Of a stretch of 64,000 bases of DNA, positions 1 to 49,844 are shown piece by piece (the first letter of the stretch is position 1; each line of letters begins with the position of its first letter). The notes under the pieces are model-generated. The model had not been told where the DNA came from. It searched no databases and saw only the letters and a list, made by a program, of their open reading frames with translations. Location: positions 343,635 to 407,634 of IMG/VR virus record IMGVR_UViG_3300036853_000446; one strand, given 5' to 3'. A program made the translations under genes and the position numbers.

Positions 1-67
1 CTCCACATCCTATTGCTCGGGATAAGCGCGGATACTGAAGACGTCCTCAGCCCAGTGCGTCCGGTCG

Positions 68-475
68 GTGGCGACGCCGATCTCAGAAGGGGTGTCCGCA
101 GGGCGCTTGCTTGTCTCGACGCACTGCGAGAGCGCCTGCAAAAGAGCTGACGGTTTGAACCGCCCTCCGACGTGGCTACGGCCACATCGCGAAAACGAGC
201 CTCTGCCGCCTCGAGGAGCGTTCGAGTACTGGAGACGAGCGAGCGAGCCCGTGCTCAGCTTCCTCCTCGACGAGCCCCGGAATTGGAAGACCCTGGATCA
301 ATGGGCCAAGGACACCCGCTTTGGCAAGAGCCGTCTTCGTCACGTGCTCGCCTGGCTCGAGCAGCGCGGAGAAGCTTACACGTTCACGCAATTGGAGGGA
401 CGAAAGGCGATCATCTATTGGGCTATTCCAGAGACGTTGAAGCCGTGTACCGCTTTGCGACCGCCGCAGAGGTGA
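68..475 (+). CDS. hypothetical protein, possibly small winged-helix-like; start uncertain
   Basis: ORF track; C-terminal half looks globular (LDQWAKDTRFGKSRLRHVLAWLEQRG); converges on the 2H gene. Confidence 0.35.
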   Translation: MATPISEGVSAGRLLVSTHCESACKRADGLNRPPTWLRPHRENEPLPPRGAFEYWRRASEPVLSFLLDEPRNWKTLDQWAKDTRFGKSRLRHVLAWLEQRGEAYTFTQLEGRKAIIYWAIPETLKPCTALRPPQR

Positions 476-1025
476 AACGGTCAACAACCCTCCGGGCCAT
501 GGCCGCCACCACCGCGTTGGTTGGGTTCAGTGCCAGGGGGAACGTCACCGTGAGCTTGCGGTCCCCCTCGTCACCGCCCCACATGCTGATCTCGTGCGCG
601 CCCCATTCGATGGTTGGGATTCGAAACTCTTCGACGGCGTCGGGCGCGTAGGCCAGGGTCACATGCGGCCTAAACGTACGGAATTTCTTGTTGAACTCGA
701 CGCCAGCCTCATCGAACGCCGCCACCAGATTGTTGCGCAGCGTGTGCAGGTCATCGGACTCGATGTGCGCGACGACAGGGTGTGACTCGTCGCCGCTAAT
801 GGGAAAGCTCGCGACCCGCGACGTCCCTACGGTGAATGGTCGCGTCCGGGCCGTGACCGCGTAGGTGGCCTTGATGGCTTCGGCGAGCATGTCTATAGGC
901 ACGTCGTCACCGATATAAATCAGCGTAATGTGCTGGTGGTCCCTTGGCGTCTTGTCCCCGGGGACTTCAATGTCGCTCAAGAGACGTGACGTGGGCGCGG
1001 GAATCGGCAGTCCGATCATCGCCAT
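423..1025 (-). CDS. 2H phosphoesterase (2'-5' RNA ligase / Acb1-like fold)
   Basis: Two HxT motifs (QHITLIY, PHVTLAY) about 90 aa apart; C-terminal tail ARRVVDRF/AAVAKRY. Confidence 0.85.
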   Translation of the reverse strand: MAMIGLPIPAPTSRLLSDIEVPGDKTPRDHQHITLIYIGDDVPIDMLAEAIKATYAVTARTRPFTVGTSRVASFPISGDESHPVVAHIESDDLHTLRNNLVAAFDEAGVEFNKKFRTFRPHVTLAYAPDAVEEFRIPTIEWGAHEISMWGGDEGDRKLTVTFPLALNPTNAVVAAMARRVVDRFTSAAVAKRYTASTSLE

Positions 1026-1027
1026 AT

Positions 1028-2437
1028 TTAAAGATCCTCTTTTCCTGTCATGACGGCTTCGAAGCGCTCGAGGATCTTGTCATCCCAATTACCTCTGGTG
1101 CCGAAATGCCCGAGAGCAAACAGCTCAGCGAAGGATTCACTCCCGCCGAAGCCCTCGGTACGGCTGTAGCTGGTCGTGCGCCACTGTTCCCGGTCGAAGT
1201 CTTCGGGCAGCCGGTTGAACCTCTCGAACCGGTGGCCCAGCTCATGCACCAGGATGTAGTCGGCACTCCCATAACTTCCTTCGCCGCGCTTCATGACCGC
1301 GGGCGTGGCCTTGACCCACATCTCGTCCTTGGCATGGATGTACCTGCCTTGTGACTTGATCTGCCCGGCGCCTTGAAAGACGACCGTGAGCGATCCTTTG
1401 AGTGCCTTGGCGCGCCATCCCTTTATCCGACCGAAGACGGCATCAATTTTCTCAGCATACTTCCGGAAGTTGACCTCGCTGATACTGGCTCGGCTCACGT
1501 AGACGGCATGCGCGAGCTTCAACTCGACAATCTGCTCCTTATTGCCGGCTGAACCATCTCCCTCGACCGTGAAGTATCGAACGAGGTCATCAAGGGCTGG
1601 CTCGAGGTGGCTCGACCAACCCCACCCCCACTGACCGTTAAAGTCAAAGAGTGAGGCACGGGCCGTTGAGTAATCACGGCTGTACTCCTCGAGCATTTTG
1701 AGGAAGCGGTTTGCTTCTTCCTTCAGCTTCTTCTGCCCTTTGGGCGTCTTCGCAGAGTCGACACGGAAGGTCTTCCGAAACCAGGCTGCAAACTCTTGAA
1801 CCTTGCCCTTGTCCTCTCGACTGAGCGGGGCGTCAGCGGGGTACGCCTTCACTCGCCCTTGGAGGTCGTCGACCTTTCGGACGAGTTCCTCCTTGAGGCC
1901 TGCCCGGAACACCCGCATCCCGGCCGCGGTGATATCCCAGAAATCACCCGCCTGGCTCTGGCCAGCGAGCTTCACGAGGCCTTGGGCCTTCAGGGCGTCG
2001 AGCTGCCCCTTGGGCGCTAGGACCACGCCCCCGTGGGCCATGATGCAAAGCTCATGCGTATGGGCGCCTGAAGCCTCCTTCTTGCCCCTCCAGCCGCCAC
2101 CGAAGCCGTTGTACTGCTTCACCGCCCACGCGATGCCGTACGGATTGGGCATGTGCTCGTAGCCCCTACCCTCGTTCGGCGCGTGGATGGTTCGTCCCGA
2201 CTGCGTGAATTCACGTCGGTCACCGTTCGCGACCTCGAGGCATTTGTCCCAGAGGTGCGGATTCGTTGCTTCGGAATCGTCCCTCAGGTTCGGCTCTGAG
2301 GGCGCCGTCTTCACGGCCCTCTTGACAGGGCGCTTGGCGGCCCTCTCGACCGGCTTGGGCGCGTCTTCCCGCCACGCGGGGGCTGAGGCACGAGCCTCCT
2401 CAGCCCAACGCAGCTGTCCCGTCCTCGACGTCTCCAC
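1028..2437 (-). CDS. multidomain protein with C-terminal zincin (gluzincin-type) metallopeptidase
   Basis: LVHELGHRF followed by TSYS...SESFAELFA; N-terminal NPHLW...PYGIAWAVKQYNGFGGGW segment; stop lies 2 nt before the 2H ATG. Confidence 0.75.
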   Translation of the reverse strand: METSRTGQLRWAEEARASAPAWREDAPKPVERAAKRPVKRAVKTAPSEPNLRDDSEATNPHLWDKCLEVANGDRREFTQSGRTIHAPNEGRGYEHMPNPYGIAWAVKQYNGFGGGWRGKKEASGAHTHELCIMAHGGVVLAPKGQLDALKAQGLVKLAGQSQAGDFWDITAAGMRVFRAGLKEELVRKVDDLQGRVKAYPADAPLSREDKGKVQEFAAWFRKTFRVDSAKTPKGQKKLKEEANRFLKMLEEYSRDYSTARASLFDFNGQWGWGWSSHLEPALDDLVRYFTVEGDGSAGNKEQIVELKLAHAVYVSRASISEVNFRKYAEKIDAVFGRIKGWRAKALKGSLTVVFQGAGQIKSQGRYIHAKDEMWVKATPAVMKRGEGSYGSADYILVHELGHRFERFNRLPEDFDREQWRTTSYSRTEGFGGSESFAELFALGHFGTRGNWDDKILERFEAVMTGKEDL

Positions 2438-2476
2438 GCATGGAGCCAGTCATTTAGTAGATTAGCGGGCCTCTGC

Positions 2477-3109
2477 TTATGCCGCGCCCATGCTATAAGC
2501 CGCCCGAACCTCTGGCAGCGGTTTGACTTTCAGGACGACGCCGCCCATTTCGAAGAAACCAGCGATCTTCCGGTGTTGCTTCGACCCGGGCGCAATGTGG
2601 GGGCAAACGTCTTCGAATGCTCCGAGGCTCGTAACGAGCGTCTCGCGCTGTACCCCGGGGTAGTTGATGTAGCCAATTCGCTTGGCTTCCCTCGGCGACA
2701 TCTCTGCCGGCGTCGCTCCTCCTCTGACCGACGGAGGCGGTAACAAGAAGGTGCCACTCTTACGGCGTAGCATGATCTGTTTGGCGTTCGTCTTGACAAG
2801 CCCCGTTTCGACTACCACGGAAGCGGTCGTCGAAACGGGCGACGGGGTTGAGAGTGCACGCTGCGTCGGCTGCATCGGCGGCGCGCCGGGTTCGCCCTTT
2901 TGCCATGTAGGGACGACCACGCGGCGTCTCGATGTCGGTTCCGCATCGAGCTTTTGGCCAAAATAGACCTTCTCGATCCAGGCCTTCTGTTTGTCGCTAC
3001 AGCGATTGAATCGGTGGATCCGATCCCACATGTCAGTGAAAGATTCGCGCTCGCGCTGATTGAGTTCAGCCCGTCGAAGCACAACGGCGAGCATGTCCTT
3101 GGCTGTCAT
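2477..3109 (-). CDS. hypothetical protein
   Basis: 210-aa ORF with AGGAG SD upstream of the ATG. Confidence 0.6.
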   Translation of the reverse strand: MTAKDMLAVVLRRAELNQRERESFTDMWDRIHRFNRCSDKQKAWIEKVYFGQKLDAEPTSRRRVVVPTWQKGEPGAPPMQPTQRALSTPSPVSTTASVVVETGLVKTNAKQIMLRRKSGTFLLPPPSVRGGATPAEMSPREAKRIGYINYPGVQRETLVTSLGAFEDVCPHIAPGSKQHRKIAGFFEMGGVVLKVKPLPEVRAAYSMGAA

Positions 3110-3551
3110 TCTTCTCTCCTGGGGACTCCCGATGAGTCAAGAGCGAGGCTTGCCTTTTTCTGGAAGGCCGCGACTCAACTCTGTTCGTCCCCCGCAGACG
3201 ATAAACGCTCTCCGCGTTCAGTTAACGCTCCCACGCGATCTTGTCAACGACTCAACTATAGCATCCCGATGTGGCAGGACCCAAATCTCGAAGCCACGAA
3301 ATAGTGTCACCCGGCGAGAGCACATCGCCCAATTGGGTCGAGCCTGTGTGGAGAAAGCACGAGCTTTCAATACCCCGCCCCTGTACCAAACCATCCGGGC
3401 GATCCCGCCGTTCTGGCGTCTCCGGCGCTTCCGGCTTTTCCGGTGTAACGGTTATCACGTTTATCCGAGAGGCTCATGTGATAGCAACAAAGTTCGCTGT
3501 CGGTGCACCATATCTCATCGTTGCATCTGACGAGATATGGGGGCGAGCTTG

Positions 3552-4124
3552 ATGACGTCGCGAGTTGCCTTCTGCGGCGCCAGTGGGACGGGCAAGACAA
3601 CGCTGACCGAGTGGGTCAAGACCACGTACTCTCTGCCCATCAATCCGGTGGGAAGCCGTAACGTCGCACGCGCGATGGGGTTCAGCAACGCCTACGAGAC
3701 GGATGCGGCCGGCAAAAGATCGGAATTTCAGATACGACTGATGCGGGAAAAGATCGAATGGGAAGCCGACCACAACGAGTTTGTGACGGATCGGACCACG
3801 TTCGACAATCTTACCTATTCGACGCTCCACGGCTGCTCGAGCATCGACGCCGCGCAGTTTGAAGCCGCGTGCACTGGCATGAACCGCTACGAATGCGTCA
3901 TCTATTGCCCAGTCTCCGTATTCATCGACTTGGGGGACGATCCCGAGCGTCTATCGAGCATGACTTATCAACAGCTCTATGACGCAGCGTTGTGGGGGCT
4001 TCTGCAGAAATTTCGCCCGCCCGGTACTCGACTCGTTACCATGCCATTCCCAAAGCTCGAGCACCGGAAAGACTTCCTACGTCAGCTGCTGCGAACCGGC
4101 CGCGAAGGCGAAGAGGACTCCTAG
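3552..4124 (+). CDS. P-loop nucleoside/nucleotide kinase-like protein (AAA_28/NadR-kinase-like)
   Basis: VAFCGASGTGKTT Walker A at the N-terminus; FVTDRTTFDNLTY motif. Confidence 0.75.
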   Translation: MTSRVAFCGASGTGKTTLTEWVKTTYSLPINPVGSRNVARAMGFSNAYETDAAGKRSEFQIRLMREKIEWEADHNEFVTDRTTFDNLTYSTLHGCSSIDAAQFEAACTGMNRYECVIYCPVSVFIDLGDDPERLSSMTYQQLYDAALWGLLQKFRPPGTRLVTMPFPKLEHRKDFLRQLLRTGREGEEDS

Positions 4125-4149
4125 AGGAGCCCTAGACCAGCTCCGGGAT

Positions 4150-4908
4150 TCAGCTGGCTGCGCGTAGGGCCGCGATGATGTCGGCCTTTGTCATGCCGTA
4201 CTTGGTCTCGACGCCCTTCTCGGTTGCGGCGGCGATCAGCTTCTTCTTGCTCCACGATTCGTAGTGCTCGGCATTATCGTCAGACACCTCAGCCTCCTCA
4301 GCGTCATGTGCGGGCGTCACAGCGATGGTGTCGGCAGCGTCAGAAATCGACTCTGCAGCTCCTGCGATCGAATCGGCGGCTTCCGCAATCGACTCTGCGG
4401 CCTCGGTGCGGCGCTCTGCACGATCCCCTCGCGGTGGCTCGCTCGCCCTGGGACCCACCAGAGTGGGCTCATCAACCGAGACGGGTTCAACCGAGGCGGG
4501 TTCAACCGAGACGGGCTCGTACTCATCAGCAACCGAGGCGGACTCATCCGAGACGGGCTCCTGGGTCGAGTTTACGGAAGTCTCCCGCGGGAGATCTTCT
4601 AACGGAGCTGCTTTCGGAGGGTCTTCCGACGGAGCTGCTTCTCGAGCTGGCTCAGACGATTGAGCTGGCTCGGATGGCCCAAATGATTCAGTGGGTTGAG
4701 CTGGCTCGGATGATTGAGCTGGCTCGGATGGCTCGGATGGTGGCTCCCCGATTGCCGCACGGCACAAGGCCGAAAGCCCTGCCGGCGAGGCGTCCGTGCC
4801 CCCCATTTCCTGGGCGTAATGGTCGCCGCGGGCGATCGTGTAGCCACGCAGCTCGGAGAGTCGAGCACGGCGGAGTAGGTCAGTGAGATCGGGGAGGTTG
4901 AGGCTCAT
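4150..4908 (-). CDS. acidic, repeat-rich protein with C-terminal HeH/Rho-N-like helical domain
   Basis: EPAQSS and EPVSV repeats; C-terminus YESWSKKKLIAAATEKGVETKYGMTKADIIAAL. Confidence 0.6.
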   Translation of the reverse strand: MSLNLPDLTDLLRRARLSELRGYTIARGDHYAQEMGGTDASPAGLSALCRAAIGEPPSEPSEPAQSSEPAQPTESFGPSEPAQSSEPAREAAPSEDPPKAAPLEDLPRETSVNSTQEPVSDESASVADEYEPVSVEPASVEPVSVDEPTLVGPRASEPPRGDRAERRTEAAESIAEAADSIAGAAESISDAADTIAVTPAHDAEEAEVSDDNAEHYESWSKKKLIAAATEKGVETKYGMTKADIIAALRAAS

Positions 4909-9289: not shown

Positions 9290-10396
9290 TCAGAGGGTCA
9301 GCTCAAAGCGCTTCATCACCGACGAAGGTATCGGCATGTTGAACACGTACGTCGCGAACGTCTCAGCGAAATCCTCACGCACGTTCGTCGCCGCGTAGCT
9401 CGACACGGTTTCTACCTTCACGGATTTCAGCCGAACGTATCGGTGATTGGGGCGCACGACTTGCCGTTCGACCCAAGCTCCCGCCTCGCTGTAGGCTCGC
9501 CAGTAATCCTTCGGTGAGGCTCCGATCTCCTTCAGATACTCGGCGACGGGAAGCCCCTTCTCTCGGAGAAATTTCTTCGCAGCCGCCGGCCTGAACTCGC
9601 CCTTCACGAGTGCTTGAAACAGATCCTGCCGCTGGTCGACGGTAAGTCCGCCCGCCGAGTACAGGTCCTCGTACTGCTCTTGCTGTGCCGTCGAGAGATG
9701 CTTGTGCCATCGCCGGTGCCCTATCTCGTGTACCAGCGTGAAGACGTCCGAGTGTTGATTTTTCGCATCTACGGTCAGCGCGATCGAGTCGCTGGCCTTA
9801 AAATATTCCCCTGCAACGCCAGGGCGACTCACTTTCGTATCCAGCAGGACTTCCCCGTACAGCAGGTCTCCGAACCCCTTTGCACGGACACGATCGGAGG
9901 CTTTGTCCAGCACCTCGAGGGGCTCGGCGTACTCCGACACGGAAAAGCCGTACTTGTTGACGATCTGCCATGGCCCATGGCTGAAGGTCTTCTCAACCTT
10001 AGCGTAGCCTTCGATCCGGTCTGCGACACGGCTCAACGACTTGAGCGTGTCTGCAAGCGACTCGAGGTGGTTGTGAATATGAATGTCTTGGATCGTCTCG
10101 TCGAGTTCGAGAGATCGGGAGTCGAAAGCTCTCTGAAGGTGCCGCAACCACCCGATCACGTTTTTCAGCTTCCGCTGCTCGTCTGGCCGCGAGAACTTGA
10201 TGTTGTCGAGCGCCGACGCGAGTGGCGCCAGCTCCCGTCCAAGTTCGAGGAACCGCTCCTTGGCTGCGGGAATGTTCTTCGCCTGGAGGAGGGCTTCGAT
10301 TCGCGGCCGCGCCGCCCTGAACGCTTGAATGGCGTCGTTCACGAGCTGTTTCGAGGCGTAGCGGGTCGCGACCCGGTACACCATCGTACTGGTCAC
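9290..10396 (-). CDS. zincin metallopeptidase paralog C with N-terminal RVATRY tag
   Basis: LVHEIGHRR...SSYAATNVREDFAETFA; GTG start overlaps the upstream stop (GTGA). Confidence 0.8.
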   Translation of the reverse strand: MTSTMVYRVATRYASKQLVNDAIQAFRAARPRIEALLQAKNIPAAKERFLELGRELAPLASALDNIKFSRPDEQRKLKNVIGWLRHLQRAFDSRSLELDETIQDIHIHNHLESLADTLKSLSRVADRIEGYAKVEKTFSHGPWQIVNKYGFSVSEYAEPLEVLDKASDRVRAKGFGDLLYGEVLLDTKVSRPGVAGEYFKASDSIALTVDAKNQHSDVFTLVHEIGHRRWHKHLSTAQQEQYEDLYSAGGLTVDQRQDLFQALVKGEFRPAAAKKFLREKGLPVAEYLKEIGASPKDYWRAYSEAGAWVERQVVRPNHRYVRLKSVKVETVSSYAATNVREDFAETFATYVFNMPIPSSVMKRFELTL

Positions 10397-11526
10397 AGAA
10401 GCGACTCCATGATCGCGCCAATGCCCGGGGGCAGGTTCTTCCCCATGACATAGTGCGCGAATGCTTCCGCAAAGTTCTCCATCCAGCCGCCTGTCTTCCC
10501 GTAGCTCGTGACGTACTCGGGCTCGCGGACGACCTCCTTCGTCTTGATGGTAAAGTCCTTGCCGCTGACGACTGCCTTGCGCAGCTCCGCTTCGACGTCC
10601 TCCCCCTTCACGAACCGAACGCCAAGCTTTTGGGCAACGGAGCCAGCCGGCGTGCCGATGGTATGCCCCATCCACTCCAGGAACAGCTCCGATGGTTTCG
10701 GCTGGGGCTTGCCGTCACGCCGCGCCTTCGCGATGTCGATGTATTCGGCCGCGACGTTCTCCCGAGCCCCGGCGTCATATGTGATCTCGCGGTGCTCGGG
10801 CGTCGTGGAAAGACGCATGAACTCGTCCCGCTGGTCCTTGTTCTTCCAGAACTTGTAGAAGTACCGGTGCCCAAACTCGTGGCACAAGGCGTGGACGTCT
10901 CCGATGTTGCCCCGGGCCTTGAGGCTCAAGTAGACAACGTCGTTGGTCACATTGTAACGAGCGGCCGCCATATGATTCGACAGATTCTTGACGATGAAGA
11001 CCCGCCCGTAGAGGACCTTTGGAAACTTTGGCTGGAGGATCTTGTAGGCCTTGTCGAGCGCCTCGAGACATTCTCGAACTTTAGGCCCCGTGACTCCGTG
11101 AGGCACGATCTCGAAAACGCCGTGCTGGAAGGTCTTGTCGTCGGCCTTGTTGATGATACCCTGCAGCCATTTGATTTCGAACGCGAGTTGGCCAAAAAGC
11201 TCCTGAGGAGCTGCGTCTGGTTCGAGCACCAGTCGTCCAAGAGCGCGAATGATGGTCAATGCTCTCTTCTGATGGCGGGGGCCGAGGGCGGAGTACCAGT
11301 CCGCGTCCACAGACCATCGGTCACCGTTACGTATGACATCGAGTTCCGCGAGCGCCTGCTCTACCAGGGCCACGTTGAACTTACCCGTACTCAGGCCCTG
11401 AACGACGGGGCCCAGAGCGCCGCGCGACAGGATGTATCGCGCCGCTACCCGCCCGGTCATCACAGCGGCTGCGGCCACCCGCGCCTTTACAGCCCACCGC
11501 GTGGCCACCCGAGCCGTCAGGTTCAC
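10393..11526 (-). CDS. zincin metallopeptidase paralog B with repeated N-terminal RVAxR tags
   Basis: LCHEFGHRY...TSYGKTGGWMENFAEAFA; GTGA overlap with the upstream gene. Confidence 0.8.
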   Translation of the reverse strand: MNLTARVATRWAVKARVAAAAVMTGRVAARYILSRGALGPVVQGLSTGKFNVALVEQALAELDVIRNGDRWSVDADWYSALGPRHQKRALTIIRALGRLVLEPDAAPQELFGQLAFEIKWLQGIINKADDKTFQHGVFEIVPHGVTGPKVRECLEALDKAYKILQPKFPKVLYGRVFIVKNLSNHMAAARYNVTNDVVYLSLKARGNIGDVHALCHEFGHRYFYKFWKNKDQRDEFMRLSTTPEHREITYDAGARENVAAEYIDIAKARRDGKPQPKPSELFLEWMGHTIGTPAGSVAQKLGVRFVKGEDVEAELRKAVVSGKDFTIKTKEVVREPEYVTSYGKTGGWMENFAEAFAHYVMGKNLPPGIGAIMESLL

Positions 11527-12884
11527 GCGACACCTTGAAGCGACAGATAGCGCTCTGCCACTCGCGTCGCGGCCAGTTTGGCCCCACCCAACCCACAAAC
11601 CTGGCTGAAGAACTCCCGCGTCCATGGTTTGACGGCGCGAGGCCCCTTCGTAATCCACAGGCGAAAGACTTCGGCGAAGGCTTCCATCGGGTTCGTATTG
11701 CCGTAGTCGGTCGTCTCTTCGATCAGAACCGGCTCCCCTACCTTGGTCTCGAGAAATTTCGTGTAGGCTGCGGGGTCAAAGACTTTCACGTCCCAAGGCA
11801 TGAGAATCATCTTAGCTAGCTCTCGAAACTTGGCTTCATCCGCGGCACCCCCCGCGTGAGGCAGAACCGCCCGTAACCGATCGTCGTCCCCGTCCAGAGC
11901 CCTTAGTGTTTGAGAGTCAACCTTACGAATGATCAGGTCGGCGAACCTACGCACGTCGTCGCGCGTGATCTTCACCGACCGCGACATCATGACCTCCTCC
12001 CAGTGGTTTCGTGCCTGCACCGGCAATTCCCGAAAGTAGAAGCGGTGCCCACACTCGTGTACGAAAGTTCCGTGACCAGAATCGTCTCCCACGATTCCGA
12101 GCGAATACATGCTCAATGTGTCGGTCGCGGGCTGATACATCCCGGTTGTTGCCCACTCTTTCGCCTTCGTGTCGAAGTCGACCGTTACCGTCAGCCCTTT
12201 GACTGCCCCTCCGAATCCAGACCGTTTGATCTCGTCGACTCGTTGCCTGAGGCTTCGAAGGAAGGACTCGAGATCATTCTGATCATCATCGTCACGTCCA
12301 AAGTTCAGTAGCACGACGTGGACGCCGCCTACCTCCAAATGGTCGACCGGGATGTAACGCTCGACTTTGCCTTCTGGTGACATTTCAAGGTAGTCGTCGA
12401 TTTCCTTCAGCGCCTTCGTTGCCTTCAGTTGATAGCGCTTGATATTGCGGTCACGTTCGTGTCGAAGCTTCGACCAGTCGGGCTCCTTGCTCGGGTGGAA
12501 GACGGGGAAGAGCTGGTGGGCATCGAGTTCGTGCCTGAGGTCCCACGCGCTCGTTCGAATCGCCTTCTCCATGTGGGTTTCGGGCCGGTCCGACGCATGG
12601 GTCTTCGGGAGGAGTTCGCGATAAACCCACTCCTCAAAGTTTTCCCGAAAGTTACGAAACAGACTTCGGGCCTGCTCGAACACGGCGCGCGCATCACGAA
12701 CGCGAGTCACGTCCGCGTCGTAGGGTACATCGGCGTCGATGGAGCGGTAGATCTTCGTCATGATGCGGAGGTCTTTCCGCCACCGATCAACAGTACTCTT
12801 GTCGAGGGTCCTCGCGCTTCGACCGCCGGTTGACAGATAGCGATGGACTAGACTCGCCGTGAGAGGTTCTCCGTCCATGATCAC
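11523..12884 (-). CDS. zincin metallopeptidase paralog A
   Basis: FVHECGHRF...TDYGNTNPMEAFAEVFR; C-terminus TRVAERYL; GTGA overlap with the topoisomerase stop. Confidence 0.8.
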   Translation of the reverse strand: MIMDGEPLTASLVHRYLSTGGRSARTLDKSTVDRWRKDLRIMTKIYRSIDADVPYDADVTRVRDARAVFEQARSLFRNFRENFEEWVYRELLPKTHASDRPETHMEKAIRTSAWDLRHELDAHQLFPVFHPSKEPDWSKLRHERDRNIKRYQLKATKALKEIDDYLEMSPEGKVERYIPVDHLEVGGVHVVLLNFGRDDDDQNDLESFLRSLRQRVDEIKRSGFGGAVKGLTVTVDFDTKAKEWATTGMYQPATDTLSMYSLGIVGDDSGHGTFVHECGHRFYFRELPVQARNHWEEVMMSRSVKITRDDVRRFADLIIRKVDSQTLRALDGDDDRLRAVLPHAGGAADEAKFRELAKMILMPWDVKVFDPAAYTKFLETKVGEPVLIEETTDYGNTNPMEAFAEVFRLWITKGPRAVKPWTREFFSQVCGLGGAKLAATRVAERYLSLQGVA

Positions 12885-13699
12885 CGCTCCAGATAGATTT
12901 CTGCGACGCAGGCCGCGGTCTTGACCATCTTGTCCATCACGCTGCCATCTTTCAAATACGCATCGGATAACCCAGGCACGAGGTATTGATTCTCCAGCGT
13001 ACCGGCCTCGTGGCCAACAGCCTCTGCTGTGGTCTCGAGTGCCTTCTTGAACTCCTTCTTGAGCTGAGTCTTACGCTCTTTCGGATCGGTTGGAAGCTTT
13101 CCACCTTTGCTCCGGACCGCCTTGAGTTCCGTCTTCATGGTTTCGTTTGCATGAAGTCCGCGAATGTCCTTGGCACTGATGTCAAATTCGTCGAGAAAGG
13201 TATTCACCTTCTCCGCCGTGATCTTACCCCCTTCATGGCAGAAGAGATCGCCGTCTTTGCAGTTCTCATGAGCATGTTTGAGAGCCGAGACGAGGGCCTT
13301 GTCGGTCACGGTCTTCTTCTGCTTGACTCCGCTCTTGCCTGTGTAGCTGATCGTAGCCTTGGCCTTGCCAAAGCTCACGTGGCTCTTCTGCCACCCGGTC
13401 ACGCCCACGTGACCGAGTTCTTCCTTCGAAGTATCATTGCCGACCCGTTCCGCGGTGTGATCCATCAACCCGACGACGAGCGCCGTCAGGGCCGTCTCGG
13501 GGTCCTTTGACGCGAGGTCCTTCTTGACGCGGGCGCGGAGCTTGTGGACGCTCTTCCGCAGCTTCTCGAGCCGTTTGGCCTTGTCGCTGTTGCGCTTGGC
13601 AATTTGCCGCTCGGAATACTCGTAGACGACCGTGTCCGAGTCCGGGATTTTCTTCTTGGATTTGTAACGAGCGGCAACTCGGGCAGCAATGGACGTCAC
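12881..13699 (-). CDS. type IB DNA topoisomerase (catalytic core only)
   Basis: Catalytic pentad ERVGN (R), YTGKSG (K), KDIRG (R), AVGH (H), NQYL (Y). Confidence 0.88.
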   Translation of the reverse strand: MTSIAARVAARYKSKKKIPDSDTVVYEYSERQIAKRNSDKAKRLEKLRKSVHKLRARVKKDLASKDPETALTALVVGLMDHTAERVGNDTSKEELGHVGVTGWQKSHVSFGKAKATISYTGKSGVKQKKTVTDKALVSALKHAHENCKDGDLFCHEGGKITAEKVNTFLDEFDISAKDIRGLHANETMKTELKAVRSKGGKLPTDPKERKTQLKKEFKKALETTAEAVGHEAGTLENQYLVPGLSDAYLKDGSVMDKMVKTAACVAEIYLER

Positions 13700-38974: not shown

Positions 38975-39610
38975 TCAAAAGGCGAAGTAGACGCCCGCGT
39001 TGACGTTGTGGAGGGGCTCCGTCCAACCGATTCCGTATCCCGCGTAGATACCGAAGTTGGTGGTGAGATCGAACCCGAGCCCTGCCCCGACGCTGCGAAA
39101 GCCGGCGGCGACGTTGAAATTGACCCACTCGAAAAAAGCCAGGTCAATCAAGATGCCCGCATCGACGCCGCTCTCGAAACTGCCGTGCGAGAGCTTGAAC
39201 GGGAGATAGCTGAGATATGCCTTGGGTCGAAAGCGGAAGCCGTAGGTCTCCGGAGTCTTCATACCGGCGGTGATTTGAACCTCACCGGTTGCGTCGACGT
39301 CGAGATGGCACCACTTCATCCGAATCGTGAACGGCCTTTTTGGGTCGGCCCCCGTATAGAAGACGCGACCGTCTTCGTCGGTCACGATCACCACTCGGTC
39401 GACATCGAAGACGGGTTTTTCGTGTTCGAGGCATTGGCGATCCCTCGCAATCGTCAAGAAGGTGTCTAGGTCTTTCTGAGGGAGACAGACGTAGCCCTGG
39501 GGAGCTTTGCAAGGGTCCTGCGCGTCCGCGAAGGAGGGAGCCATCGCGGACGCCATGGTCAGCACGGTTGCCGTGAGGACGCGCTTTTGCAGACGCTGCG
39601 ACACCGTCAT
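38975..39610 (-). CDS. signal-peptide protein with C-terminal amphipathic beta-strands (outer-membrane barrel-like)
   Basis: Leader ending AxA (ADA); terminal ...FGIYAGYGIG...VNAGVYFAF ending in Phe. Confidence 0.6.
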   Translation of the reverse strand: MTVSQRLQKRVLTATVLTMASAMAPSFADAQDPCKAPQGYVCLPQKDLDTFLTIARDRQCLEHEKPVFDVDRVVIVTDEDGRVFYTGADPKRPFTIRMKWCHLDVDATGEVQITAGMKTPETYGFRFRPKAYLSYLPFKLSHGSFESGVDAGILIDLAFFEWVNFNVAAGFRSVGAGLGFDLTTNFGIYAGYGIGWTEPLHNVNAGVYFAF

Positions 39611-40698
39611 GCGGCATCCTCGACAGCGGCAGACTCCAGAATCTCTTTGAGTTCGGGAGGCGAGGTTACCACCTGGGCAAGCGCCTTCAGAATCGGTTTG
39701 CCCCCGCCGCGCATCTTCGTGATGACCTTGTGACTGCCCGGAGAGTAGTACGTCCCGAAGATGGCCTTCAGGATACCCTTCTTGTCGAGCGCCTTGGACA
39801 GCTCCGGGCCGAGCTGAAATTCACGGCCATTGACCGTAATCACAACGGGGTTCCCTTCCCCGAGCTTCCCATAGACGATGTTGATCCGAATGTCCCTCTT
39901 GCGGTTCTGCCAGGGGTCGTCCTCGCCAACCAATCCGAGCAGGCTGACCGCGTCCTTGAAGGAAACCGCCTTGGTCAGATGGTCATCCATGCGCTCGGTA
40001 AACTTGGCCCCTTCGGGTATCATGTTGACTTTGGCCCCGTAGCCCTTCTTCAACTCGTGCGGAAATTCCCCGTAGAGGTCTCGAATCACTTTCGGGGCGA
40101 GCGTTCGGAATTCCCCGCGGACCTTCCTTTGAAGCATCCACCACTCGTCGATGTCTTCTCCAGTGTATGCATTCCTCGCCGTGTAATGCTGGGCGGCGAC
40201 GAACACGTGGGTCTCTCCATCCACGCCATAAAGGACGTAAGCCGATGATCGGGTGTCACCGTACCCGCCATAGCTCGTCTGGGTCTTGAATTTCCAATCG
40301 ACCTGATGGACGCCCGCCTCGGCGAACGCCTCCTCGAAGGTGATCCGCACGGGATCTGGCTTAGGACGCCCCTTTGGATTGGCGATTGGGCCATCCCAGG
40401 GTTCCGTCTCGGGTGCCGGCGGATCGCGAGGGGCGCCTAGATCGCGGTCGGGTCGCAAGTGCCCCGTCAGAACGTCTTTCGCAATGTTGTAGGGCTTGAG
40501 GGCGGTCTGGTCCGCCGCCTCCGCCGGATTCTCCCGTAGGATCTCGGTGACCTTGGCCCTGTACGCCGTCTGCACCTGAGCATCCGTCGGTCTGTCCGTT
40601 GAAGGAAAACCTAGCGTCTCGAGCGCTTCGGCGTAGGTGAAAGCCTTGAAAACCCGGTAGCGGGTGGCGACGCGAGAAGCGATGCTGGGCATATCCAT
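39607..40698 (-). CDS. protein with J-domain-like N-terminus lacking HPD; RVATRY tag
   Basis: ALETLGF...DAQVQTAYRAK...ENP...YNIAKDVL. Confidence 0.6.
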   Translation of the reverse strand: MDMPSIASRVATRYRVFKAFTYAEALETLGFPSTDRPTDAQVQTAYRAKVTEILRENPAEAADQTALKPYNIAKDVLTGHLRPDRDLGAPRDPPAPETEPWDGPIANPKGRPKPDPVRITFEEAFAEAGVHQVDWKFKTQTSYGGYGDTRSSAYVLYGVDGETHVFVAAQHYTARNAYTGEDIDEWWMLQRKVRGEFRTLAPKVIRDLYGEFPHELKKGYGAKVNMIPEGAKFTERMDDHLTKAVSFKDAVSLLGLVGEDDPWQNRKRDIRINIVYGKLGEGNPVVITVNGREFQLGPELSKALDKKGILKAIFGTYYSPGSHKVITKMRGGGKPILKALAQVVTSPPELKEILESAAVEDAA

Positions 40699-49277: not shown

Positions 49278-49844
49278 ATGAACGCTTCGAAGACCCTTCT
49301 AGCCCTCCTCGCCCTCCTCGCGGTTGGTTGCGCACAGAGTACTTCAGACGTCAGAGTCAGCGGGTCGGCTAGTTCAGCTCCACCGGCAGCGGCGACAGAA
49401 ACCGCACCGGAAAAGGTCGATCCACAGCCCTGCGGTCTGGCACTCGACCCAGTCCCTCAGTTGCTCGCGGAGACCACGGTGTCCGCCGCACGTTGGTCTG
49501 CGGCAACCGGCTGCGATGTACGAGTCGAAGTTGGCGGCTTGCCGGTCCGTTTCGCGACTCCTGAAGAACTGACCATGGAGGACGGTGGGCATGCACGCGG
49601 TGTGGCGTCGTTCGGCGACGACGGCCAAGTCAAGTTCATTGGTTACCGCAGCGGCTCGATGAATGACTGGACGGTCGATATGACACTGACACACGAGCTG
49701 GGCCATGCACTCGGCTGCCACTCGCACACCAACGATGGCAGCGTGCTCGACTCGCCGTCTCAGCTCTACTCGAAGATCACTGCCAATGCGCTAGAGTGTG
49801 TCTGCGCCTCGCTCAACTGCGAAGTGTTCGTTCCGGAAGCGTAA
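49278..49844 (+). CDS. lipoprotein metzincin (matrixin-like) metalloprotease
   Basis: Lipobox LAVG-C; HELGHALGCHSH zinc motif. Confidence 0.8.
   Translation: MNASKTLLALLALLAVGCAQSTSDVRVSGSASSAPPAAATETAPEKVDPQPCGLALDPVPQLLAETTVSAARWSAATGCDVRVEVGGLPVRFATPEELTMEDGGHARGVASFGDDGQVKFIGYRSGSMNDWTVDMTLTHELGHALGCHSHTNDGSVLDSPSQLYSKITANALECVCASLNCEVFVPEA

Follow-up and report, generated by a model that had tools for sequence, protein, structure and literature searches.

The zincin–2H gene pair

The final 64 kb of a linear IMG/VR virus contig from a soil metagenome (407,634 bp, 60.5% GC) carry two adjacent minus-strand genes, which encode a zincin and a 2H phosphoesterase. This stretch of 64,000 nucleotides (contig positions 343,635 to 407,634, read by translation table 11) is referred to as the window in the following. 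The open reading frame (ORF) coordinates place the stop codon of the zincin gene 2 nt ahead of the start codon of the 2H gene (Table 1)—a gap which, judged from the layout, implies translational coupling of the two. An earlier note on this DNA had described them as a coupled pair and had pointed to the 2-nt gap, to intact HxT motifs and a C-terminal double tag in the 2H protein, and to a W-rich N-terminal zincin segment that looked like a separate module. All of these observations hold, with the addition that the pair recurs in relatives but is not obligate.

Table 1 Features of the zincin–2H locus, in window coordinates.
Feature	Position	Strand	Remarks
Zincin hub gene	1028..2437	-	469 aa from GTG 2437; stop TAA 1030-1028; from the ORF list
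Disordered N-terminal region, aa 1-52	2282..2437	-	Predicted local distance difference test (pLDDT) 41-54; LRWAE(D/E) and PSxPxxTDE motifs conserved in the alignment
W-rich mobile module, aa 53-118	2084..2281	-	Includes PYGIAWAVKQYNGFGGGW at 2090-2143; pLDDT about 96
Winged-helix-like domain, aa 119-170	1928..2083	-	Region of the model
Helical core ahead of the zincin domain, aa 171-298	1544..1927	-	Helices 171-290 in the model
Gluzincin catalytic domain, aa 299-469	1031..1543	-	HELGH 1232-1246; ESFAE 1124-1138 with putative third zinc ligand
Shine-Dalgarno-like GAGGA	1035..1039	-	Within the zincin 3' end, 9 nt ahead of the 2H ATG; read from the sequence
2H phosphoesterase gene	423..1025	-	200 aa, ATG 1025-1023; core aa 1-166 (528-1025); HIT 924-932; HVT 657-665
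2H tail helix, aa 167-200	426..527	-	Tag 1 RRVVDRF (aa 178-184, 474-494); tag 2 AVAKRY (aa 188-193, 447-464)
Convergent small ORF	68..475	+	Overlaps the final 53 nt of the 2H gene, including the tag 2 codons
Upstream co-directional gene	2477..3109	-	210 aa, 39 nt before the zincin gene; from the ORF list

Architecture of the zincin

The public call of the zincin gene (P0001, 428 aa) begins 41 codons downstream of GTG 2437. It looks too short because it skips the N-terminal LRWAE(D/E) segment that is conserved in homologues, and the longer ORF of 469 aa is probably the real one. An AlphaFold2 (AF2) model of this protein (pLDDT 84) displays five regions, the last of which is a gluzincin domain. 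Its HELGH (aa 398-402) and ExFAE (aa 434-438) motifs are invariant in 57 zincin homologues, and from these motifs the gluzincin appears catalytically intact.

More than 120 metagenomic homologues of the zincin were found, all of them unnamed. No Pfam, PHROG or NCBIfam family was matched, and tblastn against 50,697 phage records returned nothing. The model PF07737 ATLF (Peptidase M34, lethal factor/PPEP) was not matched by this zincin and was reached by its paralogs only below threshold (E 1e-3 to 0.03). On the structural level, a Foldseek search of the full model against the PDB gave nothing better than E 0.02. The zincin fold was recovered solely by VIA-align, and the resemblance to lethal factor exists at the level of the fold only.

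The genome holds at least nine zincin paralogs with a HExGHR motif, to which hhalign ties the family described here (97.5% probability, E 5e-12); ExFAE is common to both groups. In a metagenomic homologue of 790 aa (P0054), a second zincin, of the paralog type (HELGHRYWFK), separates the W-rich module from the winged-helix unit—both zincin families of this genome are therefore joined in one polypeptide elsewhere. A zincin of another type, a small HELGHALG protein of 188 aa (window 49278-49844, plus strand), adjoins genes resembling tail fibres and does not bear the HExGHR...ExFAE signature. It is probably the other "paralog" that the earlier note had in mind.

The W-rich module forms a compact β-α-β-β-α-β domain in the AF2 model. 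It is missing from short zincin homologues, stands alone as an ORF upstream of 2H in one related locus (L048), is fused to 2H in another (L050), and takes part in a permuted module order in a third (L030). Altogether, it occurs in 143 representative protein clusters, within proteins of 82-1777 aa and in N-terminal, internal or C-terminal position, which marks it as a separate and mobile unit. Its partners include LPD1 with ART-PolyVal, a PARP-like ADP-ribosyltransferase (ART), Peptidase_C39, PAP2, PolyA_pol, and DUF5661; one protein of 1483 aa combines the W-rich module, LPD1, and ART-PolyVal. A feature search of the ESM Atlas with the module gave no usable match.

The 2H phosphoesterase

The AF2 model of the second protein (pLDDT 91) shows a 2H fold with the catalytic HxT/HxT tetrad. 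The motifs H32-I-T34 and H121-V-T123 are invariant in 54 homologues, and the invariance of M1 across the same set supports ATG 1025 as the start codon. On this protein, the Pfam models PF13563 and PF02834 score 50 bits (cut-off 27, E 4e-13) and 33.9 bits (cut-off 23.3), and the Acb1 model PF23474 scores 23.8 bits, under its gathering cut-off of 27. Within the family (n=54), the three models match 54, 53, and 48 members with best E-values of 9e-17, 4e-13, and 3e-9, respectively. The sole NCBIfam match is ThpR (TIGR02258), at 41.7 bits versus an equivalog cut-off of 65.7.

A comparison of the family profile with PDB sequences retrieves ThpR-type enzymes at the top (2e-4 to 7e-4), followed by Acb1 (4e-3). 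The same order is found by Foldseek with the 2H model: ThpR/LigT at E 3e-9, the rotavirus VP3 2',5'-phosphodiesterase at 2e-6, and Acb1 at 8e-6, so that the protein clusters largely with LigT/ThpR, which the earlier note had named among the outcomes that would count against its proposal. It also shows the full two-lobed LigT architecture. Acb1, in contrast, has been described as a compact 2H fold whose C-terminal lid is short (Hobbs et al. 2022, PMC9117128), and the 2H protein does not share this compact form of ~150 aa. It is a full-size LigT-like enzyme of a distinct, phage-restricted subfamily.

The label "Acb1-like" given in the earlier note is thus not specifically supported, as the Acb1 model stays under its cut-off and LigT-type models lie above theirs. 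The placement on the LigT side lowers the reading that this protein is an Acb1; hydrolysis of nucleotide signals stays compatible with it. The fold alone cannot give the substrate, because the target-normalised template modelling (TM) scores differ little between Acb1 (0.63) and LigT (0.64-0.66). We give roughly equal weight to RNA with 2',3'-cyclic or 2'-5' ends and to nucleotide messengers. On present evidence, the protein should be labelled neither "Acb1" nor "ThpR".

Coupling and fusions in relatives

A profile of the 2H family retrieved 80 loci from IMG/VR; the close family comprises 62 IMG/VR loci. The zincin gene lies directly upstream of the 2H gene in L001, L004, L014, and L030, at a spacing of -4 to +7 nt; in L001, a JGI metagenome contig, the two genes share one base. 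The order is reversed in L020, where the zincin gene follows the 2H gene with a 4-nt overlap. In L027, both are fused into one protein of 499 aa with the order 2H-tag-zincin, and a word search with this fusion protein revealed further 2H-zincin fusions in P0216 (81% identity) and P0219 (46% identity, 94% coverage). Two word searches together returned 17 pairs of zincin and 2H homologues on contigs of equal size, some of only 1-7 kb. Within the 62 close-family loci, the conserved neighbour met most often beside 2H is the zincin or W-rich module. A complex prediction for the zincin core (aa 171-469) with 2H scored 0.00, a value obtained without controls that counts neither way for binding.

The RVxxR[FY] tag

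Behind its catalytic core, the 2H protein continues into a tail that is predicted as a single helix (aa 170-198, pLDDT 75-83) and bears two copies of an RVxxR[FY] motif, RRVVDRF and AVAKRY. The tag is found just after the core in at least 55 of 89 2H orthologues, whereby tag 1 is kept in most of them and tag 2 only in the ~14 nearest. Conservation of tag 2 may in part reflect dual coding, given the convergent ORF that overlaps its codons. In a 529-kb IMG/VR contig (L047), a 316-aa ORF upstream of the 2H homologue (L047:1229-...) starts with a tandem SRVAHRY...SRVAHRF. Hence, doubled tags are not unique to the 2H tail.

Among the 443 proteins of the genome, the strict motif R[VI][AV].R[YFW] occurs ten times within 30 aa of a terminus and three times in the interior, a 12-fold difference in density. 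Terminal hits numbered 0.4 on average and three at most in 200 shuffles, and at least one of the "interior" cases (window 9290-10675) resembles a miscalled start. Carriers of the tag include zincin paralogs (often at both ends), a type IB topoisomerase (TopoIB), two DnaJ-like proteins, 2H itself, and several unknown proteins. Of the two possible J-domain proteins, one (window 39607-40698, minus strand) bears an N-terminal tag, and its likeness to J-domains comes from reading the sequence, with no significant Pfam hit; the other (G000:C1:171064-172095, minus strand) bears a C-terminal tag and matches DnaJ at E 5.5e-6 and 26.8 bits versus a cut-off of 27.8. Since these two carry it, the tag is not restricted to nucleic-acid enzymes.

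In fused proteins, the tag marks every module boundary. It is situated at the N-terminus, the zincin/TopoIB junction, and the C-terminus of P0239, and between 2H and the zincin core in L027 and P0219. Short zincin homologues and fusions open the core with a canonical RVAAR[FY] tag, and the zincin of this locus bears an internal degenerate form, GMRVFRAGL (1895-1921), where the core helix begins.

In our view, the tag more likely serves docking or targeting than cleavage alone, because proteins with a single domain retain it at their very ends and it stays conserved at 45% identity. The procapsid interior, the zincin or another hub could be its partner. A full-text literature search for the tag sequence found no paper, and a search on capsid targeting in jumbo phages gave general background only. 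Short terminal peptides that address unrelated enzymes to one destination are known from the capsid targeting sequence of T4 and the cargo-loading peptides of encapsulins. The element described here resembles these in being a short terminal peptide common to unrelated enzymes; however, its sequence is unrelated, and it is found at either terminus as well as at internal junctions.

Relation to polyvalent proteins and other known systems

Iyer et al. (2017) described a zincin-like MPTase as the main hub of the polyvalent proteins, which combine several enzymes, act against the host, and are found in phages and conjugative elements. They unified this hub with lethal factor and suggested that the polyprotein is processed by it either ahead of or following delivery (PMC5512222). 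In the same work, 2H domains are reported as parts of polyvalent proteins and also as solo genes of phages—in no case together with RNA ligases—and are proposed to be Usb1-like RNases or degraders of 2'-5' or cyclic nucleotide signals (PMC5512222).

Relatives of the pair fit this description. A lethal-factor-like zincin hub (HExxH plus Glu on the following helix) is combined with 2H, ART, TopoIB, NUDIX, and nucleotidyltransferases, partly within one chain, and the W-rich module co-occurs with the Pfam markers LPD1 and ART-PolyVal. Distant 2H homologues are embedded in giant ORFs: L062 (2344 aa) strings together two HExxHR zincins, 2H, and NUDIX; L081 (1510 aa) consists of an N-terminal tag, 2H, zincin, and a PolyA_pol domain (CCA-type nucleotidyltransferase); and L065 (2602 aa) consists of TopoIB, 2H, and PolyA_pol. 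In the genome that carries the pair, a search for PolyA_pol gave no match. The zincin core is fused to TopoIB in P0239, P0246, and P0249, and to a DRAT-like ADP-ribosyltransferase in P0098. Modules of the pair and unrelated enzymatic domains share one polypeptide in L027, P0219, L062, L081, P0239, P0098, and P0354.

The same themes recur within the genome itself. A TopoIB gene (window 12881-13699, minus strand; Topoisom_I E 9e-26) encodes an RVAARY tag at the N-terminus and shares 4 nt with the start of a minus-strand zincin paralog (11523-12884), which bears a tag at each of its ends. Together (11523-13699), they are a second zincin-plus-effector pair of the same design. Elsewhere, an ART-PolyVal gene (G000:C1:178804-179604, minus strand; PF18760, 44.6 bits versus a cut-off of 31.2) is convergent to and overlaps a zincin paralog at 177528-178826, and a calcineurin-like phosphoesterase (metallophosphatase, 324399-325274) follows tandem zincins at 325352-328791.

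In contrast to the polyvalent proteins described so far, the locus bears separate, translationally coupled genes instead of one giant polypeptide: two ORFs are set apart by a stop codon and 2 nt, and there is no single large multidomain chain. Its zincin also differs in giving no match to PF18818, and each module bears a terminal RVAxR[YF] helix. The coupling as such belongs to a known kind—that of the polyvalent proteins—and the split, tagged form of it is new.

Three further groups of proteins are instructive for comparison. ThpR/LigT enzymes (TIGR02258; PDB 5h7e, 1iuh, 5ldm) are only ~19% identical to the 2H protein, which stays below their equivalog cut-off and has features of its own: invariant EWGAHE and WGGDxGD motifs, the tagged C-terminal helix, and a phage-only, zincin-linked distribution. 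Acb1 (PF23474; PDB 7t26/7t27; PMC9117128) resembles it as a phage 2H protein with the HxT/HxT tetrad, by weak but consistent Pfam similarity, and by a plausible role in counter-defence. The nearest viral structural matches are the 2H domains of actinophages (E 9e-11, TMq 0.69, root-mean-square deviation 2.8), namely of Microbacterium phage ValentiniPuff gp7, Arthrobacter phage Laroye gp18, and Gordonia phage GMA6 (PHROGs 2659 and 18402). These are annotated as capsid morphogenesis, structural or "RNA ligase" proteins, and the 2H genes of ValentiniPuff and Laroye come after terminase-portal-MuF or portal-protease genes. They share with the present pair the theme of a 2H domain attached to virion-associated proteins. 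However, they are fused to or located next to portal, MuF or protease genes, whereas the 2H gene here stands by itself next to a zincin gene, within a region of replication-type genes.

Genomic surroundings

Close cultured relatives of this phage are absent: phage records match its family-A DNA polymerase at no more than ~24% identity. Replication-type genes (PolA, a DnaB-like helicase, SNF2, an AAA ATPase, and TopoIB) occupy positions 1-40 kb of the window, and genes resembling tail fibres occupy positions 44-64 kb.

The small ORF that converges on the 2H gene has homologues in nine related loci according to phmmer, mostly directly downstream of and convergent to 2H or the module. It matched no Pfam or NCBIfam family, and its sequence suggests a small winged-helix regulator. 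The co-directional gene upstream of the zincin is conserved at this position in L001 and less strongly in L014; it matched no family in Pfam, PHROG or NCBIfam, and it is a possible third member of the operon. A scan for promoters and terminators across window positions 1-4200 gave nothing exceeding the shuffled expectation. Further upstream, a 252-aa protein (window 4150-4908, minus strand) bears long acidic low-complexity repeats of the SEPAQ type; over its last 50-80 residues, it matches the C-terminal part of PHROG 3281 ("endonuclease VII", E 3e-9) and weakly also Rho_N.

The contig encodes 30 tRNA genes, clustered at 140-165 kb (G000:C1:140248-164650). All of them are on the minus strand, and they are interspersed with a zincin paralog (160384-161556) and a C-terminally tagged protein (163206-163697). 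An RtcB RNA ligase (G000:C1:208139-209400, minus strand) matches its model in two pieces located in different open frames (model positions 1-116 and 131-426), which could be due to a frameshift, an intein or intron, or an assembly error.

Interpretation of the gene pair

The reading we prefer, although we would put its chance of being right no higher than that of being wrong, is that of a split polyvalent-type anti-host effector cassette, consisting of a zincin hub and a LigT-like 2H effector. Gene 1 would supply the hub, with the mobile W-rich domain, the winged-helix-like domain, the helical core, and a lethal-factor-like gluzincin (HELGH...ExFAE). Gene 2 would supply a full-size LigT/ThpR-like 2H enzyme, translationally coupled and ending in the long helix with its two RVxxR[FY] tags. 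By this coupling, both proteins would be produced together in a fixed proportion. The basic-aromatic tag helices might address the modules to a common partner—most likely the procapsid loading site of ejection proteins, or the zincin hub. The zincin might then process module boundaries or host proteins, and the 2H enzyme might hydrolyse a 2',3'-cyclic or 2'-5' phosphodiester in RNA ends or in nucleotide messengers that arise from RNA- or nucleotide-based defences of the host. Packaging of the pair into the virion is plausible by analogy with the MuF-linked 2H domains of actinophages, with polyvalent proteins, and with the large ejection-protein loads described for giant phages.

Several observations weigh against this cassette. 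Zincin or W-rich module is beside or fused with 2H in only 8 of the 62 close-family loci, so that the association is recurrent and not obligate. The pair sits amid replication-type genes (PolA, DnaB, SNF2, TopoIB) with no recognisable head module around it, and tags on DnaJ-like proteins and TopoIB suit a capsid no better than other destinations, for example an oligomeric assembly or a replication compartment. A search of the genome for MuF gave no match, and for Pfam MPTase-PolyVal (PF18818) neither the zincin nor the whole genome gave a match at E <= 1. The PF18818 model, however, need not cover every MPTase, because 12 MPTase clades have been described (PMC5512222). Finally, this is an uncultured soil-metagenome contig, with a genome completeness of 86% by CheckV.

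The first competing explanation takes the 2H protein as a functional analogue of Acb1, preloaded into the capsid by its tags, that cleaves the cyclic oligonucleotides of CBASS (antiphage signalling based on cyclic oligonucleotides) or type III CRISPR and thereby destroys the signal from the first minute of infection. Its HxT/HxT tetrad is the same as that of Acb1 (PMC9117128), the Pfam model of Acb1 is matched by 48 of 54 family members (best 3e-9), and its cut-off is passed by the fusion protein of L027 with 29.0 bits. The near-equal TM-scores to Acb1 and LigT, the degradation of nucleotide signals proposed by Iyer et al. for solo phage 2H proteins (PMC5512222), and the tags together with the head-module position of the actinophage relatives, which fit packaging, are in line with it as well. 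Nevertheless, the 2H protein itself stays at 23.8 bits against a gathering threshold of 27, LigT-type models always score higher, and a LigT-like core of 165 residues with a long helical tail stands against the compact Acb1 with its short lid. We regard this explanation as unlikely.

An RNA-end function in the cytoplasm is the second alternative, and we likewise consider it improbable. Here, 2H would be a ThpR-type enzyme that opens the 2',3'-cyclic phosphate ends which ribonuclease defences of the host (or phage tRNA processing) leave behind, either for repair or to block RtcB-type repair by the host; the zincin would be a mere neighbour or regulator, and the tags would be oligomerisation helices. 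The nearest relatives in sequence and structure are indeed ThpR/LigT and drCPDase, distant 2H homologues are fused to CCA-adding-type nucleotidyltransferases, and the genome bears both the 30 tRNA genes and the RtcB ligase. However, RtcB joins 3'-phosphate or 2',3'-cyclic phosphate ends directly and cannot use the 2'-phosphate that ThpR produces. By this established enzymology, the RtcB of the genome needs no healing step of the ThpR type; it is also encoded ~135 kb away. The ThpR score falls well short of the equivalog cut-off (41.7 versus 65.7 bits), 2H-zincin fusions speak against a chance neighbour, and the absence of RNA ligases beside phage 2H proteins of this kind points in the same direction (PMC5512222).

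It is very unlikely that the adjacency is plain synteny among close relatives, with unrelated jobs for zincin and 2H and a "tag" that is just a common helix-forming sequence: other genes do lie upstream of 2H in 54 of 62 family loci, and an AAA_28 neighbour is retained only in the closest relative, but independent fusions (46-81% identity), a reversed order, fusions of the W-module with 2H, co-occurrence in giant polyproteins, and a terminal enrichment of the tag far above shuffles all argue otherwise. A model in which this AAA_28 P-loop kinase and 2H mimic the kinase and cyclic phosphodiesterase (CPD) healing domains of Trl1-type tRNA ligases was dropped, the kinase neighbour being kept in no other relative.

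Biological implications

Polyvalent proteins are regarded as one of the major classes of first-strike effectors in phages and have hardly been tested so far. The locus described here represents a split, pairwise form of their modules—a zincin hub and one effector—for which fused, reversed, and permuted versions exist in nature for comparison. The proposed roles are therefore directly testable with small proteins. An over-specific annotation of the 2H protein as Acb1 is corrected at the same time.

A bolder version, which we consider quite doubtful, sees the RVAxR[YF] helix as an undescribed address or processing signal of soil megaphages that every module of an ancestral polyvalent effector bears at its boundaries (zincins, 2H, TopoIB, ART, and DnaJ-like proteins). 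Zincin hubs would recognise this signal, cut or assemble the modules, and load the capsid, and 2H would destroy the nucleotide or RNA immune signals of the host at injection. More generally, the RVAxR[YF] motif of termini and junctions may serve many enzymes of one megaphage as a portable tag for targeting or processing. If true, it would help to tell which proteins travel together in uncultured giant phages.

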